This document shows, piece after piece, positions 24,519-47,113 of a stretch of DNA of 64,000 nt (position 1 is its first letter; each line of letters opens with the position of its first letter). This stretch comes from Penicillus capitatus. Its lineage: Eukaryota > Plantae > Chlorophyta. The notes below the pieces were generated by a model, which was not told the origin of the DNA, searched no databases, and was given only the letters and a program-made list of their open reading frames with translations. The DNA is taken from NCBI GenBank assembly GCA_965649825.1, contig OZ287695.1, forward strand, positions 1,539,288 to 1,603,287. The letters are read 5' to 3'. The translations under genes were made by a program, and so were the position numbers.

Positions 24519-25829
24519 ATGATGCGCGTCTGTTTTTGGATCTTCTCTCTCCTAATCGTCGCGGCAGCCGCGAAGACGCCTGCGAAGAAACGCATTTTGG
24601 TCATCCTCGAAAATGAGGAGCTCAAAACGACGCATGCGTTGTTTTTTGATGACTTGAAGGCGAAAGGATTCACCGTGACATTTCGATTTGAAAAAGACAA
24701 AGGAGTTGCGTTAGAGAAATGGGGAGAGTATCAATACGATAATCTCATTCTGTTTACACCAACAGCTCGACACTTTGGCAGGCGGTTGAGCATCAAAGAA
24801 GTGATCGATTTCGTCGACTCTGGACGAAATCTGATGCTCATTGGCTCACCGGAATTATCCAAACGCGTTTTTGATGTCGGAGCTGAATGCGGAATCGATT
24901 TCGAGACGTCGGGATCGAACGTACTCGATCATTTTCATCATGCCAAGCTGGAGGGTAAAGACTTCGATCCCCATCTCATCACGGTAGAGCCAGAGAATCG
25001 CATTCGCGAGCTCTTTGATAAACGCAAATCGGGAAGGGCGCAGCATCCTCTCCTCTATCGTGGCATTGGACACAGTGTGGCGGCCGATCAAGAATATGTG
25101 ACGGTGGCGGTGGCAGGCAATCCGACTTCCTATTCGTGGGATCCGGATCAACCGACGCCTGAAGTCGAGAAGATGCTCGCGGGACGTGACCTCTCACTGA
25201 TCAGTATGATGCAGACACGTCACAATGCACGTGTGACGGTTGTGGGTTCTCTGGATTTTTTCAGCAACGAGCTCTTTACGACGCCCTTTACGTCATCCAA
25301 GCATCCATCCAGTACAGAACGGATGGTTTCTGGAAACCGGGAATTTGCACAGGACCTCGCTCTTTGGACGTTTCAGTCCATCGGTGTCTTACGCACACGT
25401 ACCCCTCGGCATTATAACCGCATGACGGGTGTGAAGCCTCCCATGTACACCACCAAAGATCCCATTCATTTCGAAGTCGACATCATGGAGTACGTGGAGG
25501 ATCACTGGCAGCCTTACCATGCGAAAGACGTGCAATTAGAGTACTATATGATGTCGCCATACATCCGGCTGCCATTGGAGGACCAAGGCAATGGGACATT
25601 CGCATTGGATCTCGTCGCCCCTGATGTCCATGGGGTGTTCAAGTTTCTGGTAACTTACCATCGACCCGGTTACTCGAACGTCGACATCACCGAAATGGCA
25701 CCCATTCGTCCATTTCGCCATGACGAGTATGAACGCTTCATCTTGACGGCCTATCCCTACTATGCCAGTGTCTTTTCGATGATGGTCGGATTTTGGGTCT
25801 TTGGGATGATGTATCTCTATCACAAGTAG
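24519..25829 (+). CDS. OST48: Oligosaccharyltransferase 48-kDa subunit (WBP1/DDOST), intronless
   Basis: Signal peptide, THALFFDDLKAKGF, ARVTVVGSLDFFSNE, DVQLEYYMMSPY, PDVHGVFKF, IRPFRHDEYERF...AYPYYASVFSMM, C-terminal TM plus YHK. Confidence 0.95.
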   Translation: MMRVCFWIFSLLIVAAAAKTPAKKRILVILENEELKTTHALFFDDLKAKGFTVTFRFEKDKGVALEKWGEYQYDNLILFTPTARHFGRRLSIKEVIDFVDSGRNLMLIGSPELSKRVFDVGAECGIDFETSGSNVLDHFHHAKLEGKDFDPHLITVEPENRIRELFDKRKSGRAQHPLLYRGIGHSVAADQEYVTVAVAGNPTSYSWDPDQPTPEVEKMLAGRDLSLISMMQTRHNARVTVVGSLDFFSNELFTTPFTSSKHPSSTERMVSGNREFAQDLALWTFQSIGVLRTRTPRHYNRMTGVKPPMYTTKDPIHFEVDIMEYVEDHWQPYHAKDVQLEYYMMSPYIRLPLEDQGNGTFALDLVAPDVHGVFKFLVTYHRPGYSNVDITEMAPIRPFRHDEYERFILTAYPYYASVFSMMVGFWVFGMMYLYHK

Positions 25830-31906: not shown

Positions 31907-33861
31907 ATGATGAAGTCGCAGCGACATGTGCATGACGCGCGATCGGAGTGTCAAGTGATCAACGAACAGCTCATCCGAGAGGGCATTCGGGTAGATGTCT
32001 GACGCGTTCTTTCGATTGCGATCGATGGCATATGGTCTGCACGTTAGATCGATGATGAGGCGACGTCTCTCGAAGAGAAGCGCCAGACGATGGCTTTCGG
32101 GGACATCGAGACACTCAGTCTCAGTTTTCGAAACGTTATCGCCATCGAGTATCTCCATGGGCTGCACGCATTGAAGAAACTGCAATTGGATAACAATCAG
32201 TTATCCGTCATCCAGAATCTCGATGCTTTGGTGCCGTAGCCTCTCAGCAATGCAGGGCACGTCACATCACGAATTGGATAGGTGAATCTTGAGTGGTTGG
32301 ATCTTTCCTTCAACCGAATCGAAAAGATCGACGGACTGGACAGACTCACAAAGCTGACGGATCTATCGCTCTTTGATAACAGAATCAAAAGGATCGAGAA
32401 TATGGATGCTCTGAAGAAACTGCAGATCTTGTCCATCGGTATGCCGAACAACAGAATTTCTACATTTCCTTAAAGGACGAAGCATTCATGCCAGGCAATA
32501 ATCAGATCTCTCATCTGGAGGATGTCGATTATCTGAGGCGATTTAAGGAACTGCGTGTGCTGAGGATCTCAGAGAATCCTTTGTGTCAAGTCTTGTCAAT
32601 GCTATCCACCAAACACAGGGGCGTATGGCTTCCGCATATCAGGTGGAAGGCTATCGAAGCTATTTGTTGTCTCGTTTGGAGAATCTCAAGAGTCTGGACT
32701 ACAAAGCAGTCTATCAGGATGAGATCGATGATGCCAAAGAGCAGCATCAAGTACCGCGGTCCTTTCTTCTTCATCTTCAACATTGCATGATGTGACAGGA
32801 CGATCTGCTCGAAATCGTTGAGAAAGAAGAGAGGGAAGAAGAACGTGAAGCAGCGGAGGAGGAAGAAAGGAAGAACAACGAACAGATGTCCAAAGCAAAT
32901 CTCGCCGATGTCTGCGATCTCTTACAGAACATGGAAAAGAGTGACCCAGATTGGCAGCGACTGGCACACATTCCGGCAGTCAGAGAAGTGTGGAATGAGA
33001 CCAAAGCAAAGTTCGACAGCAGCTCTGAAGACTTCAAGGTTTTGGCTCGGTGATGTGACAGCCACTGTCACATCGATGGACGCTCTAGGTAGCCATCCTA
33101 GAAATGGAAAAGAAGAAAGAAATGGAGACCGATCTCTGGCACGGCTCACTGACTGCCTGCATACAATCCAAAACAGCGCATTGTCGAGATCTGATTGCGT
33201 GCTTTGAAAAGGAGAAGAAGGCTCTTTTGCAGAGAGAAGAGATCCGTCCATTGGATCGCACTTCATCTCTGAAGGCAAAGCTGATGCGACTGAAACAACA
33301 CCTCATCGTGCTCGCGGAAGAGATGCAAGATATTCGATGTCAGTTCCATCAAGAGTACGAAGCAGTTTTAGTGAATCTTAGTGCTGAAAAGACGACCCTC
33401 TACGCGACATTCTTCACTCAGGTTCACTCTCCGAACGGTGGTCGGTCTTTGCTTGCCAACACTGTTGGTGTGACCAGGTCCGCGATCTTATGAATGCATG
33501 CAGTAATGCACTGAATTCTGCTGCATTGGGCGCGTTTGAAAAAGTCCAGTTGGAAGGCGGTTCCGAGAAAGTTCTGCCGGAAGCGGCACAACAAATTCTA
33601 CATGACAGGGATGTCCTGATGGCTGTCCTTCAGAGCAGCCAGGACTACAAAGCCGCTCAAATTGATACTGTCGAAGATGAATGCGTCCGAAAGGAGACAG
33701 CATCCGTAGAACAAATCTCTCGACAGTTATCCCTTGAAGAAAAACGACGTTACAGGAATGCAATCTCCCAAATGTTGGCATATATTGAACGAAACATGAC
33801 AGATGCAGACGACGACCAGTCTGAGCACTCGGCGACACTACAGTCTGCAGACCATGAATGA
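31907..33861 (+). CDS. DRC3: Dynein regulatory complex subunit 3 (LRRC48), LRR plus coiled coil
   Basis: [76 protein letters not shown], then a long coiled-coil C-terminus. Confidence 0.85.
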
Positions 33862-35602: not shown

Positions 35603-36288
35603 GTCGCCCCGATCGGAGCACAATTGCATCAGCCAAATGCAGAAAGGCTTGTATCCGGCACGCCAGAGAACAAGAATTTACTCACGCATGCATACTAGCT
35701 CTCGATTTTTCACTCTCGATTCTTTCACTCCTGCTCAGTCAGCAAATCATCCACAGATCTTGAAGGCTGATGGATCATCATCTACTGAACTCATTTCATA
35801 CGTTGGTTGATCTGCAGCTATAGACAAACAACATCGGGGTCTAACGAAGAGAGGCATATAGGTGGGCAGGGGGTGAGGTGATCACTATCGACTTGGGATA
35901 TGGGTGATCTCATAGTTTTCGAGCATGTTGTGCCGCATTCTTCACGGCCGTGCTGTGTTCATCATCATCCCAGTCGCAGAAGTATCGATCACCGAATTCA
36001 CCAAGCCCTACGCATGCACTACCACTGTCAACCATCCGATCACGAACGACGAAACAAGGCGGCATCAATAAAGAATTTTTAGCATGGAGGAGAAGCCTTG
36101 TCTATATTGCATAGCGTCCTCTTTCCAAGCTTGGACGAGGCAAAGCATAGCCTGAATGTCAGTTTTATCGCTGTGCAAGGAATGCATTAAGGGCATTGTT
36201 GCCAGTGGCACGTTCAAAAAGAAAAACAAGACTTCTTTAACATCCGAAATTAAAGGGGGATGTGTTTCAATCTCATCATCATTCAAGG

Positions 36289-41492: not shown

Positions 41493-42249
41493 TTATGCTC
41501 GGGTTCGGCCATGGGCTCTGAGAGAGGTCAGGACAGTGGGTTGTTGGTAACGGGGAAGATTCCTTGCTTCTCTCAGCCAACCACTATCTGACACATCTGT
41601 TTCAGAACTCTCTTTCGAATGAGATCGCACGAGCGAGCTCGATGAATGGCGTCTTTCCAACACGACTCTGTCAAGGTCTGTTCTGTCAGAAGAGGAACCT
41701 CTGCGCAGCGACTCGATGAAGGGACCCATGGCCACATTCGACATCTGCAGGCGCTGCGGTTCGTCTTTTGGTGTCAACAGGTTGTTGCGATATGAGCCGG
41801 GTGGAACGCGTGGAGGTCGATTGAGTTTGTATTTCGCTCCAAGGGATTTTTCTGTCCATATTTCCCCATCAGAGAGCTAAACGAGAAGAGTGAGATTGTG
41901 TGACTTGCTGAGGATTCCGTTGGTAGCATATAACGAGGAACATCTTCAACACAGCTGGATGATGCAGCTTTTTTCCGCCGAGTTGAAGGGGCCTCTTTCT
42001 TGACGTACTCCGACTGTGCTTCCCCGAAAGAGGCCATCCTGTTTCCACAAGATGACCTCAGTCGCGTCGACATACAGGAGTTGTATATCTTCTCTCGCGT
42101 TTTCTGTGAGTCTATGACTAAGGTCCGAAACTGGAACAGAGCAGAGAACGCACGTGTGACGAACTCTCCGTCGGTTGCATGTACGAAGGACGATTCTTGG
42201 CGTGTCCATATTTACCGCCCGTGCCGCAGGTTTTCTTCTCTGCATTCAT
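41493..42249 (-). CDS. Hypothetical basic low-complexity protein with three PxY(M/Q)xPT motifs (3 exons)
   Basis: ATG 42249 MNAEKK...RPSYMQPTESS, then ~50-nt introns to VPRYMLPTESS and LPRYQQPTVLT; the frame is preserved. Confidence 0.6.
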
Positions 42250-42430
42250 CTTTGGCAGTTCTCGGACCGCTATGCCACACGCGTGTGTGTTTTCGCAGAA
42301 GTGTCTAGTAACAGAAAAGCTTCAGCAAAACCGCAAAGATGCTTGAAAACACAACGGCAGGAAAAACGCGAAGTTTTTTGGAACTTGGCAACCTCCGCAT
42401 ACGTTCGGTTGTCGGTGGATAAAAGTTTAC

Positions 42431-42692
42431 CTGAGCTCGCGGGAATGTTCGTTGGAAGCAAAACTCGTGCAGTGACTCCACTGAAGCTATCGTGCACGAG
42501 GGCCGGCGCAACACGCGCGAATCCGTGAGCAGCGAATGACAACCGTTGAGCCGTAGATCAGAACATGTATATTCTTAAATGTGACGATCTACGTGACGGG
42601 GTCGTGTTCACTAAAGGACATGTACTGGCCCCTTACGTGCAGAATGGAGTGGATCATACCGATGGCCTTTAGAGAAGAAGTCAAACACTATG
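42431..42692 (+). repeat. Degenerate dispersed repeat, copy 1
   Basis: Aligns by eye with 45057-45330. Shared blocks include ctgaagctatcgt, ggccggcgcaa, gcgaatccg, aatgaca-ccgtt-agccg, tgtatatt, taaatgt, gtcgtgt, acatg-actggc, cttt-gaga, aacac. Confidence 0.8.
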
Positions 42693-43507
42693 TACGTGGG
42701 TGCTCCATCGCCCAATGTCTCACGAAGACTCCTAATCGCCTACAAAGCAAGCTGCTCAACTGCTCTGGCGTGTGACGACATTTTTCAAGAATTTGAGACG
42801 ATGATACTCTGGATTGATGATTCGGGTTCGGTGTCGTTTTTGTTGTTTTGATTACGAGTCCATTCTTTCTGGATCCGTTTGACAGGGTGTACTAATGGAT
42901 GATGCTCTTCAAAGGAAGGTTCAAAGGAAGGCAAACTTCTGTACAGGGGACGATTGATTCTTCGCTCGTATTGGGTGTTTCAGACGTAGATCGACTTCCC
43001 TGTTCTGGGAATGATGCACTGTTAAGCGCATTCTGAAAACGATATCCCATTTTGCTATGTTACACTAAATGATGGTGTGCTTGGTTAAAAACTTTGGAAG
43101 ATCTGAATGCAGAACGACGGCATCGATGGCCTCTAGGAAAACGGTGTCAGCTCGGTCACTCTGTGCGTAAACGTCCGTCACATCATGACCCTTGATTCAG
43201 TAGAGCTAACTTCTGCATCTGGACAGACTACTCTACAAAGAAACAGAAATATCCGAGGACGCGGCATACGGAGAGGCAATTACCGTTGAAGATAATTCGA
43301 TCTGGAACAGACTGCCGAAGGCAGTCACGGAACACGTGTCCCCTATCCTTTTTTCCTTCACCATGCGCTCACGAGCTTTCCTCGCCAAAGCTGTGAACGG
43401 CACCGGCAGACAGACAGCCGAGGTGTGAGATCAAATCCAACAGATAGAAGGCAAGGATCACATCGATCAACTTCCGTTCCAAATCTAATAAGGGTGCTGG
43501 TTGCATC

Positions 43508-43974
43508 ATGTACTTCAAGAGCTTTTCTGCCATCCCATCACGCAGCGCCTTTCTTCGTGGACATCGCGCTCTGCGTCTCGCGCCTCGGCCGATCAGCCGC
43601 GGCCGAACGCGCAAGCCTCCTCAGTCGATGTTCGGCTTCGGCAAGAAATCTCTGAGAACAGACTCCGAAGGTGCGGGTAATGGTTGACAGTCAAAAGCGC
43701 GATGACTATGGATACTGATGACGTCGAACAGTACTTCAACGACATGGGTATCCTTGCTGAAGACGGGACATACGATCGCATGCAAGCCTATCTGAATTCT
43801 GGATTGCACCTCGTCGACATCCTTCTGTTCTGGACATCCTCAGAAGGCGACGATCCCAAAGTCCAAGAGCTCCTCGATGCTGAAGCATCTGTCGAGACAA
43901 AAGATATGAAGGGCAATACGCCATTCGATCTGGCAGACAACGATTGCGTGCGAGAACGTATATCCAGTACATGA
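43508..43974 (+). pseudogene. LTD: LTD/GDC1 (LHCP translocation defect) ankyrin protein, frameshifted
   Basis: Transit-peptide-like MYFKSF...MFGFGKK...EGAG is in frame 1 (TGA at 43685-43687). SQKRDDY is in the next frame, and DTDDVEQYFNDMGILAEDGTYDRM...VDILL...SEGDDPKVQELL is in the third, which means two +1 insertions. Confidence 0.8.
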
Positions 43975-44128
43975 GCAGATACCGATTCCGAAATGTCGTA
44001 CGATCGATCCATCGATCGATGTAAGATTCCGACACGTTCGCACATTCGCTTCCGCTCTTTTGCGCGTCCGTTCTCGCAGCGTATTGCGTTTTGTCCTCTT
44101 CCGTTCTGCACTCGGAGAGATGTCGATG

Positions 44129-44972
44129 TTAGGAAAATTGCTTGTGGGTAGGCATCGACGTTCCATGAACTGATAGTCGTCGAACGGCTGTGTTCCGTAG
44201 CGGACGAAGCCGGACCTGCGGCGCGAAAACTTTACGAAAACAGTGGCAAACTGATGGCAGGTCTTTTGCGCTGCTCTCCCTAAAGTGCGACCAAGACGCG
44301 TGTGTTTTAGTACTGGTCCCTGCGGCGTACTTTACCGACCGCGTCTGCTTCTCCTGCATCTCTCGATTTGCCCAACCGACGGTTGCTTCTAGGGTGGGTC
44401 GATGCAGAAGGTGGTGGATCTCGCACTTGCCCCCGTCGTGGTGTACCATTCTCATGTCTCCATGAACTGCATCATCTCAGACTACGTGCCACCCGCTGTT
44501 CGAAGTCTGGCTCCACATCAAAGGAATACGCAGACGATGATACCCTTATATCTGTAGTGTTGTCAAGATGGGGCGTCTTCGGAGCAAGTGGCCTCTGTCT
44601 ACTGGGTCTGACAAAGCTCGCCGTTAGCGGTCCGGGTCTCACAGGAGTCATCAAGAAACTATGGGAATGAAATCTTGTGGACGACCGCCTCTGTCGTCTG
44701 TAATGTGCTGCTGACTTGAAAAGACGTTTAGATCCGCACTTCCACGTCTCCCTTCTTTGGTTCACGCAACCATGCATTTCGGAAACAAATCCAAAAGCCC
44801 TCCCTTTCTGCTGCGATTTACTTTCACTTGTCCGAAGATCTATGAGATTGGTAGACATGCATAACGACAAATCGAGTAGAAGGAGAAGGTCATGCAGAAC
44901 AACAGACGTGCGTGAAAATGCATGAGGTGGAGGAACATGATCTTTCTCGGAAGTTGGCACGTGCTGCATCAC
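44129..44972 (-). CDS. Possible hypothetical protein (low complexity)
   Basis: 166-aa ORF 44472..44972 plus ORF 44129..44455. No family recognised and the splicing is not resolved. Confidence 0.3.
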
Positions 44973-45056
44973 CCACCTTCGGTTGACAGATAACCCAGAT
45001 CCGTCACCTTACGTCATGCGACGCTTCAACGTCCACTTTTACGTGGGTCAACGAGG

Positions 45057-45330
45057 ATCTGAACTTACGGGATATGTGCCGAGACTCCGCGCTGAAGCTA
45101 TCGTACAGTGAGGCCGGCGCAATCCTCGCGAATCCGCGAGAAACAAATGACAGCCGTTTAGCCGCAAACTGGGGAGTGTATATTTTTTAAATGTCATGCC
45201 CTATGCGACGAGTCGTGTCCTCTGGAATACATGAACTGGCTTCCTGTGTGTATTATTAAGTTTATAGTCTAGAGTGCACAAGCCGAGATCATGATCTGTC
45301 TTTGGAGACAGGGTTGAACACAAGGTTTGT
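45057..45330 (+). repeat. Degenerate dispersed repeat, copy 2
   Basis: Same orientation as 42431-42692, about 2.6 kb away; contains the perfect hairpin CTCGCG-AATC-CGCGAG. Confidence 0.8.
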
Positions 45331-47113
45331 TTGTTGGTCAGTCGGTTAAATCAATGGAGAAATGAGAAAGCCAATAAACGCCACACCTCTGTCCCATGGG
45401 CCCGAATGTCTTTGGCTCGATCCGATCCAGATGGAATTGACTTTATCTTCTTCTTCTTCTTTTCGACTTGGTATAAATTAACATGTAACAGCAAACAAGG
45501 AAGCTCCACAAACAGGCATAAAGAATGTGACCTGACTATAGTGTGTGATCTGGCACGATCCAGGAGAGTTTCACAAAATTGAGACGGCATGCAAAACAGA
45601 TGGTGAAGCAGATCTGTAGGGATACTGGAAAGCAATGAGTGAAACGCTACCGTTCCCTACTTGACAAATATTCAAGGCTACCCGGTAACTACTACGTCTA
45701 CAAATCCTTCCTCGAACTCTCACATCATCATCATCATCAGAAATCCCCGTTCCTCGATCTGCTCCTCTGTCTGCAGAGACAAAGTTGAGCTTATCTGAAA
45801 ACTCTCCATGGATAATAAACCCTCTCCACTGTAGGCGGATAGATAACCCTTGTGCCAACGATGTTGAATCGAAACAGCGTTCCGAACTGGTCGGTCTTGA
45901 TCGCTAGAGGCATCGATCCATTCGGTACAGGAATTCTTGAGAAAGGAGTTCTTCTCTTGTTGTTGTCACTCGAACGATCGGTTTCCACCATTCACTTGTA
46001 TGACTGTCTCTTCTTCATCTTCTCTTCTTTTGCTTCTGCTCCCATTGCTCTCTTCAACCAGCATTCCTCAATTATCTGTATTCTGTACAAATTCCTGACG
46101 CAGTGCATACGTACGACGACACTGACTGTCTGCCTGTCTAACCAGGAACGACAAAAGGACATTGAAAGGATGACTGGTAAGAAATTGTGTGATTGCTGCA
46201 AACTTCAATGCATAAGACGAGGCATGCAACGTGAATGTGAGGAGTAGTAGTAGGAAGAAAGACATCATCCAGCAGCAGTACTATTATTCGGCACAACATT
46301 GACTTTGGCAGCAGGCACAATAGTCCATGCCCTCATCACTGTCAGACAAACAATGATCTCTTGATACGTCATACAATGCGTTCTTTGAGATTGAGTGCGT
46401 GAGGTCTTTCTTAGAACAAGTGTTGCCGCATCGTTCAACGGACTAAATGGATTGGTCAATGCTGGACAACACAGATTGAAACATCGATACAGGTTTCTCT
46501 TTGAGACCCCCAACCCGATAGATGCGTAAAAGCTGCATAAGCACGTCTTTCTGAGGAGGGCAGCGTCAGAAACTAATGACAACGAACAACGACAAAACTC
46601 CATCATGGACGTGACAAACACAAAATAACTTGCAGAAGAGAATGGAAAACACAGAGAAAGATAAATGGATGGATAGATATATAGATGGATGGATAGATAT
46701 AACAGACAGCATGACAACAGATCATTAAATGGAATTTAATGCCATCAACATTCTTCGAGATGCTAGCAGACGGACTGTACGCATCTGTTCTTCAGCCAGC
46801 GATCGTAGTACAAGCGATTCGCATTCATCAAAGGCCTTCCACAGCAACCGAATGACAAAAAATCCTCTTTCTCTCCTCGCGTTATGGAGTGAATAGACAA
46901 ACAAACAGATACTAATGAAGACTCGCTCGCACACACATACACATCAACCCACCAAAAGAATCCAAGGCAATTACTACTGACGCACGTGTATCGTCAATTC
47001 ATCTAGCAGAAGGATAAAATCCTTAGAAAGGCAATTAAAGAGATATGTCATTAAACGATGCGCACGAGGTGCAACAGCATGGATTCAAATTTCTTTCAAC
47101 AACAGCTGAAATA

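Follow-up and report, generated by a model that had tools for sequence, protein, structure and literature searches.

The LTD protein has been described as handing LHC proteins, once imported, over to the chloroplast SRP pathway (PMC6018721, PMC6244792). Members of the LTD/GDC1 family, including Arabidopsis At1g50900 and Chlamydomonas Cre12.g551950, have in common a homologous core (FGFGK..., AG.VGSQ.RDDY.YDDVEQYFNYMG.LA..GTYDRM...HP.D...) with one ankyrin-like repeat. Duplicated pseudogenes that are kept similar to their parents by gene conversion are well known in humans, with CYP21A1P (CYP21A2) and GBAP1 (GBA) as examples. The locus described here carries an LTD copy that has the family core after a transit-peptide-like N-terminus and differs from described LTD genes in that its frame is broken twice, near-invariant residues are mutated and its evolution appears neutral, with a working LTD predicted at a separate, canonical locus. 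Judged from its sequence and that of its relatives, the broken gene is very probably a non-processed duplicated pseudogene (psi-LTD), the spare copy from an old two-gene duplication, with an intact LTD elsewhere.

Throughout, the window is the whole 64-kb stretch of DNA that was analysed. Three taxa were compared: taxon A, the window's own alga (ENA metagenome assembly ERZ25074695); taxon B, a sister taxon (ERZ26696514, ~160x); and taxon C, a third and more distant taxon (Logan SRR33785045/6), whose LTD is 61% identical. The canonical locus is represented by two alleles from taxon A (L001, L003) and two from taxon B (L004, L005), and the window-type locus by L002 (ctg339690) in taxon A and by two haplotypes of the window-syntenic region in taxon B (L006, L007). 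The 7-sequence DNA alignment referred to below comprises the window copy, the four canonical copies and both taxon-B duplicates. Between window positions 33704 and 53974, L002 differs by 46 SNPs, mostly transitions, and a 4-bp indel (CACG, 35683-35686); window and contig look like different haplotypes or strains of one alga. A single-exon OST48 gene in the window (24519-25829, + strand) encodes a protein that shares 54% identity with its Caulerpa lentillifera (Bryopsidales) counterpart and at most 40% with that of any other named organism; on this gene the window comes from a green alga, an ulvophyte near Bryopsidales, with Caulerpa as the best named OST48 relative of taxa A and B.

An LTD reading frame with two insertions

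An LTD-like frame at 43508-43974 on the + strand is spread over three reading frames, as found both by translation and by tblastn with an intact relative (joint E 1e-63). Its parts are as follows.

43508-43678, + strand: psi-LTD piece 1, residues 1-57, in frame 2 (mod 3), with the ATG, a transit-peptide-like N-terminus and an FGFGKK motif
43679/80, + strand: first +1 insertion, an A, the window reading GGTAATG and the canonical copies GGT-ATG, with one of the two A's extra
43680-43715, + strand: psi-LTD piece 2, residues 58-69, MVDSQKRDDYGY, in frame 0, shifted by +1
43716, + strand: second +1 insertion, a T, the window reading TACTGAT and the canonical copies TAC-GAT, outside any homopolymer
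43717-43974, + strand: psi-LTD piece 3, residues 70-154, the DDVEQYFND... ankyrin-like core, in frame 1, shifted by +2

The four canonical LTD copies are uninterrupted in frame, and the window copy cannot be read in a single frame. DNA alignments place exactly two 1-nt insertions, 36 nt apart, in its coding sequence relative to the canonical one. The extra A is present in the window and L002 and absent from all four canonical and both taxon-B duplicate sequences; the extra T is likewise common to the window and L002 and missing from the other six aligned sequences. An earlier reading made from the window sequence alone (the sequence-only reading) had proposed an LTD gene split by two +1 insertions over three frames, and translation, tblastn and DNA alignments agree with it. 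That reading had placed the first insertion correctly, as an A near 43680, and the second as a G near 43710, where it is truly a T at 43716, ~6 nt further 3'; the site was misplaced because that reading relied on a plant motif, DDFDRDD, and close relatives read DDYGYDD.

Piece 1 agrees with canonical residues 1-57 at 91% of amino-acid positions; its frame continues to a TGA at 43685-87, and its N-terminus is R/S/A-rich and transit-peptide-like by inspection. The 59-aa N-terminal ORF was absent from the protein collection by exact-sequence lookup. Piece 3 shares 80% of its amino acids with the canonical copy; it ends in a TGA at 43972-74, the canonical stop being TAA. Inside piece 3 lies the 88-aa ORF called by the gene caller (P0002), which starts at ATG 43708. 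The ORF of the ankyrin part is still open to the original stop position, with a stop retained there (TAA to TGA), and its openness appears uninformative, with about one third of such sequences open by chance on a rough estimate.

Homology of the conceptually mended product to LTD is extensive: the closest intact relative matches at E 7e-78, and the Chlamydomonas and Volvox proteins that carry the UniRef name LHCP TRANSLOCATION DEFECT match at ~1e-26. A search with this protein returned P0001, the intact relative, at 84% identity; P0002, the window's own 88-aa gene call; further algal proteins at 50-72% identity; and the Chlamydomonas and Volvox LHCP TRANSLOCATION DEFECT proteins at ~50%. P0001 lies on ctg332979 (25x) and P0002 on ctg339690 (41x), both contigs of ERZ25074695, and three further intact proteins fall in the same cluster as P0001. 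The match is far beyond chance, and the conserved core (DDVEQYFNYMG...GTYDRM...HP.D...PKV) assigns the sequence to the LTD/GDC1 family. Against the Pfam Ank model the canonical copy scores below threshold (E 0.002, 18.6 bits vs a cut-off of 21.1) and the window's 96-aa ORF has no match. At G60, Y78, L107, A109 and G125 the mended window product stands alone in an alignment of 20 LTD proteins, no other sequence deviating there. Two replacements pointed out in the sequence-only reading, YFNY to YFND and HP(I/V)D to HLVD, are real, the columns concerned being identical or nearly so in the other 19 proteins.

Such lesions might in principle be long-read artefacts, the extra A and T being consensus errors in an ordinary, intact second LTD. 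The first insertion turns a single A into AA, as slippage would. Yet the T at 43716 is outside a homopolymer, and both insertions occur in two non-identical assembled versions, the window and ctg339690 (50 differences in 20 kb), which share them because no difference between the window and L002 falls in 43330-44098. The neutral substitution pattern and the replaced near-invariant residues, moreover, go beyond any consensus error, and the orthologous taxon-B copy (~160x) is independently broken. An assembly error is extremely unlikely on these grounds.

Rescue of a full-length LTD has also been considered, either by a 14- or 20-nt GT-AG micro-intron (43677-43690 or 43671-43690), as the sequence-only reading had suggested, or by two programmed +1 frameshifts or RNA editing. 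Frame 2 is indeed joined to frame 1 when 14 or 20 nt are taken out, the only lengths that work (arithmetic by hand). A micro-intron would, however, remove the MVGSQ...DDYGY motif, so that the conserved GMVGSQKRDDYGY (GMVGSQ...DDYGY) is swapped for unrelated residues, and it would be much smaller than the defined introns here, of 50-53 nt. No GT...AG pair of normal length, such as that of the neighbouring SDH4 introns (50-53 nt), restores the frame when read by hand; the natural candidate, 43677-43731 (55 nt), leaves a stop. The coding sequence is also neutral on both sides of the break, and the taxon-B orthologue is broken in other ways and lacks a start codon. It is barely conceivable that the window gene is rescued by any of these means.

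A duplicated two-gene block and its canonical counterpart

The psi-LTD is part of a longer segment; outside it, blastn finds no match between the window and the canonical LTD locus. The segment, the gene that follows LTD within it and the repeats that bracket it are listed here.

43330-44734, + strand: duplicated LTD-SDH4 block
44120-44670, + strand: intact SDH4/CybS paralogue (Pfam PF05328, E 1e-11 to 5e-13, 45-50 bits vs a cut-off of 27)
44120-44147, 44201-44260, 44311-44342, 44393-44504 and 44558-44670, + strand: working exons of SDH4, the last three well supported and the first two provisional
42467-42629, + strand: direct repeat, left copy, 73% identical to 45076-45240
45076-45240, + strand: direct repeat, right copy (165 bp), bracketing the block together with 42467-42629

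The block is 91.6-91.9% identical to the canonical alleles of taxon A and 84.5% identical to those of taxon B, with the same end points in all, and its flanks have nothing in common with the canonical loci, even by tblastx. In L001, L003, L004 and L005 the gene order is FtsZ - PP2C - TsaD - LTD - small gene (SDH4) - DUF7953 - ATP-synt_10 - G6PD. The canonical order also holds in taxon C, where LTD is followed by CybS, and because this distant taxon has the same gene order the canonical locus is taken as ancestral. A JAB gene beside the canonical locus of taxon C was compared with the window locus, and no homology was found beyond LTD and SDH4.

A pseudogene with a second copy elsewhere was among the explanations offered in the sequence-only reading and is the one that is supported: an intact, strongly conserved LTD is present at the canonical locus. 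Within taxon A the intact gene (L001, L003) is present in the same assembly as the window-type contig, on other contigs, with coverage of 41x for the pseudogene contig vs 36x and 25x for the canonical contigs. Taxon B has both loci on one contig, ctg303811 (1.67 Mb): its canonical LTD lies within 776-796 kb, and 906-926 kb is taken up by the window-syntenic region, in which the OST48 gene and a 207-aa neighbour are also found. From these coordinates ~133 kb separates the two LTD copies, which are inverted relative to each other. From this contig, the similar coverage and the lack of a second OST48 orthologue at 85-95% identity in taxon A, we infer that in assembly A a single genome comprises ctg339690 and ctg340449/ctg332979. 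Two other relationships were considered and rejected. The intact copy (84% amino-acid identity, 25x contig) was first suspected to be a sister-species orthologue; its flanks are unrelated, OST48 lacks a second homologue at 85-95% beyond alleles, and both loci occur on one taxon-B contig. A recent duplication specific to taxon A is ruled out by the presence of the same block in the syntenic region of taxon B.

The block carries ~178 bp of sequence 5' of LTD, the spacer between the two genes and an SDH4 gene with introns of 50-53 nt, and it has no poly-A tail. These features indicate a duplicated, non-processed pseudogene, which would have been copied as genomic DNA with flanks and introns kept.

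The 165-bp pair is the only repeat pair in the 64-kb window, and both of its copies are also found in taxon B. No other copies occur in the window and none near the canonical loci, and a search of the repeat for mobile-element signatures found no coding potential and no convincing LTR ends. A long target duplication and an LTR-like remnant are both conceivable origins of the repeat.

The second gene of the block, which encodes a succinate dehydrogenase subunit (the small membrane anchor), resembles SDHD/SDH4 (CybS, PF05328) in that the gene directly 3' of LTD scores above the gathering threshold in both canonical and duplicated blocks, and it differs in its shortness, the working model being of ~114 aa with introns of 50-53 nt. 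A CybS gene was called independently at the same position after LTD in taxon C. Pfam scores did not separate alternative 5' exon models of SDH4, all of which reached 48-50 bits; the model adopted is one in which every window-private substitution is intronic or synonymous. The frame of SDH4 is open in all seven copies. Between the window and canonical A there are 7-12 synonymous and no nonsynonymous differences, and between L007 and canonical B 11-14 synonymous and one nonsynonymous, giving an omega of 0 to 0.03 for duplicate vs canonical copies and of 0.09-0.10 between taxa. The copies are 95-98% identical 3' of LTD, above LTD itself, because SDH4/CybS is encoded there. The gene callers had placed only a spurious 100-aa ORF (44368-44670) at SDH4.

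Within the same gene, a stretch of 95 nt that spans a putative SDH4 intron (window equivalent 44137-44231) shows 100% identity between canonical A and B, despite a dS of ~0.35, and the duplicate copies do vary there. An Rfam scan of 41500-46500 returned only a chance IMPDH match (E 0.44, 21.6 bits vs a gathering score of 95.4), and RNA folding of the ultra-conserved 44120-44262 gave no signal (z = -0.24).

Selection, lesions in the sister taxon and exchange between copies

Canonical LTD shows, between taxa A and B, a dS of 0.34-0.35 and an omega of 0.11-0.12, and for the mature part a dS of 0.41 and an omega of 0.07-0.08. The private branch of the window copy holds 17 nonsynonymous and 6 synonymous changes in addition to the change of stop from TAA to TGA, and ~14 of the 17 nonsynonymous changes lie in piece 3. 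This ratio fits neutrality (expected nonsynonymous fraction 0.77, binomial p = 0.80) and differs from the 14 : 29 of the canonical copies (Fisher p = 0.002). The dN/dS comparison with relatives that had been proposed as a check thus returns a low canonical omega and a neutral window-private branch: the canonical LTD is under strong purifying selection and the window copy evolves neutrally. Strong constraint on SDH4 next to neutrality of LTD in a single 1.4-kb block is the clearest sign that the psi-LTD is dead, and the block would have been retained because its SDH4 copy is under constraint. Decay of antenna biogenesis or photosynthesis, another explanation put forward from the window sequence, is not supported, the canonical LTD having an omega of ~0.11; nothing suggests loss of light-harvesting antenna assembly, because an intact LTD is kept elsewhere.

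The sister taxon carries the same block with other lesions. L006 and L007 are collinear with window 29644-50336 (20.9 kb, 86% identity), the block included. In the window, this site is flanked by a 216-aa gene at 39.7 kb and a 206-aa gene at 47.1 kb. Their LTD has lost its start codon (ATG to GTG), has gained an A after the equivalent of 43693 and has a 3-nt deletion at the equivalent of 43708-10 that creates an in-frame TGA; L007 additionally lacks the LTD stop codon. Neither window insertion was found in the taxon-B syntenic LTD in the 7-sequence alignment. Each lineage has its own disabling lesions. Two derived changes, G to D (43687) and G to E (43883), are common to the duplicates of both taxa, and, together with the syntenic block, they place the duplication before the A/B split.

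The four indels counted over both taxa are confined to 37 nt of the 465-nt coding sequence, between transit peptide and core, those of taxon B at ~13.95-14.0 kb of L006/L007 and those of the window at 43680-43716. By our own calculation, a post hoc test, P is ~0.002 if the four are independent uniform events and ~0.15 if each lineage had a single complex event. Such clustering is not expected under a purely neutral model; it could come from a hotspot, from one complex event per lineage or from chance. It might also be non-random, selection having repeatedly uncoupled the transit peptide from the core and left a cytosolic LTD-like ankyrin fragment, or having repeatedly silenced a second LTD of harmful dosage after each repair by conversion; we regard this as improbable.

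The sequence-only reading had also suggested an ankyrin protein of ~88 aa without transit peptide, starting at ATG 43702 or 43708; in a fuller form of this proposal, a cytosolic protein of 88-96 aa has been neofunctionalised and is kept by selection. The ORF 43708-43974 is open to the ancestral stop and was called as a gene (P0002), the taxon-B copy also has an open C-terminal ORF after its TGA, and the indels of both taxa cluster between transit peptide and core. The private changes, however, are at 17 nonsynonymous to 6 synonymous those of an unconstrained sequence; for the mature part a hand tally gives ~14 : 5, and an omega of ~0.8 that is likewise not tool-computed. Near-invariant residues, conserved across green algae, have been replaced, and the 96-aa ORF lacks a Pfam ankyrin match. 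Past the TGA of the taxon-B copy, the next in-frame ATG falls inside the conserved core, and the proteins of the two taxa would consequently not be equivalent. Maintenance of a short ankyrin protein is therefore very improbable.

Similarity between the duplicate and canonical copies follows species more than locus. Over the block, 75 informative sites group by species (each taxon's duplicate with its own canonical copy), 5 by locus and 2 crosswise. Window LTD and canonical A differ by a dS of 0.14-0.16, ~40% of the A-B distance, a value that marks the last homogenisation of the LTD coding sequence. The two taxon-B haplotypes, L006 and L007, show no difference in the upstream region or the transit-peptide part and diverge in a block equivalent to window 43957-44560. 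In the equivalent of 43975-44119 they are only 87% identical to each other, and L006 is identical to canonical B at 136/136 positions. Canonical B is matched by L006 at 40 of the 50 sites where the haplotypes differ and by L007 at 10. Here a recent conversion from the canonical copy to the duplicate has left a tract in L006 that still segregates between haplotypes, and conversion between the copies is continuing.

The grouping by species also bears on whether taxa A and B gained their LTD-SDH4 copies independently and recently, in place of a single old duplication followed by conversion, each duplicate being nearer to its own canonical copy than to the duplicate of the other taxon. Against this stand the same syntenic site, end points and flanking 165-bp repeats in both taxa, the two derived changes (43687 and 43883) common to both duplicates, and the conversion tract caught as a polymorphism in taxon B. 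Independent gain is highly improbable given these features, and one old duplication with later conversion is the reading followed below.

Proposed history and comparison with known systems

In the ancestor of A and B, a 1.4-kb genomic block at its ancestral position would have given rise to a copy elsewhere on the same chromosome. The copied block would have comprised two complete adjacent genes, LTD and SDH4/CybS, taken from the ancestral order FtsZ - PP2C - TsaD - LTD - SDH4 - DUF7953; the direction and mechanism of the original copying are inferred. The SDH4 copy probably stayed functional and the redundant LTD copy lost its function. Repeated gene conversion between the blocks has followed, and because of it each taxon's duplicate resembles its own canonical copy. 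Since the last homogenisation (dS ~0.14-0.16) the window LTD has been unconstrained and has gained its two 1-nt insertions and 17 nonsynonymous changes, some of which hit near-invariant residues. The window copy should give no functional LTD, and the psi-LTD is presumed to be neither expressed nor functional.

For annotation, we recommend the label psi-LTD for the locus, removal of the 88-aa gene call and entry of the adjacent small gene as a second SDH4/CybS. A frameshifted LTD could pass for loss of the antenna or of photosynthesis, or for a gene with exotic micro-introns, and neither applies here. The result is ordinary and no surprise, of use for teaching as a small, tidy example of a two-gene block with opposite fates and of gene-pseudogene conversion caught as a haplotype polymorphism.

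Compared with CYP21A1P/CYP21A2 and GBAP1/GBA, the psi-LTD is alike in being a segment copied with flanks and introns, with disabling indels and neutral substitutions, and in its patchy, apparently continuing exchange with a functional parent on the same chromosome. It differs from these systems in that the duplicated segment is a two-gene block whose members appear to have met opposite fates, LTD dead and SDH4 conserved, and in that the lesions disabling the pseudogene are not the same in the two sister taxa.
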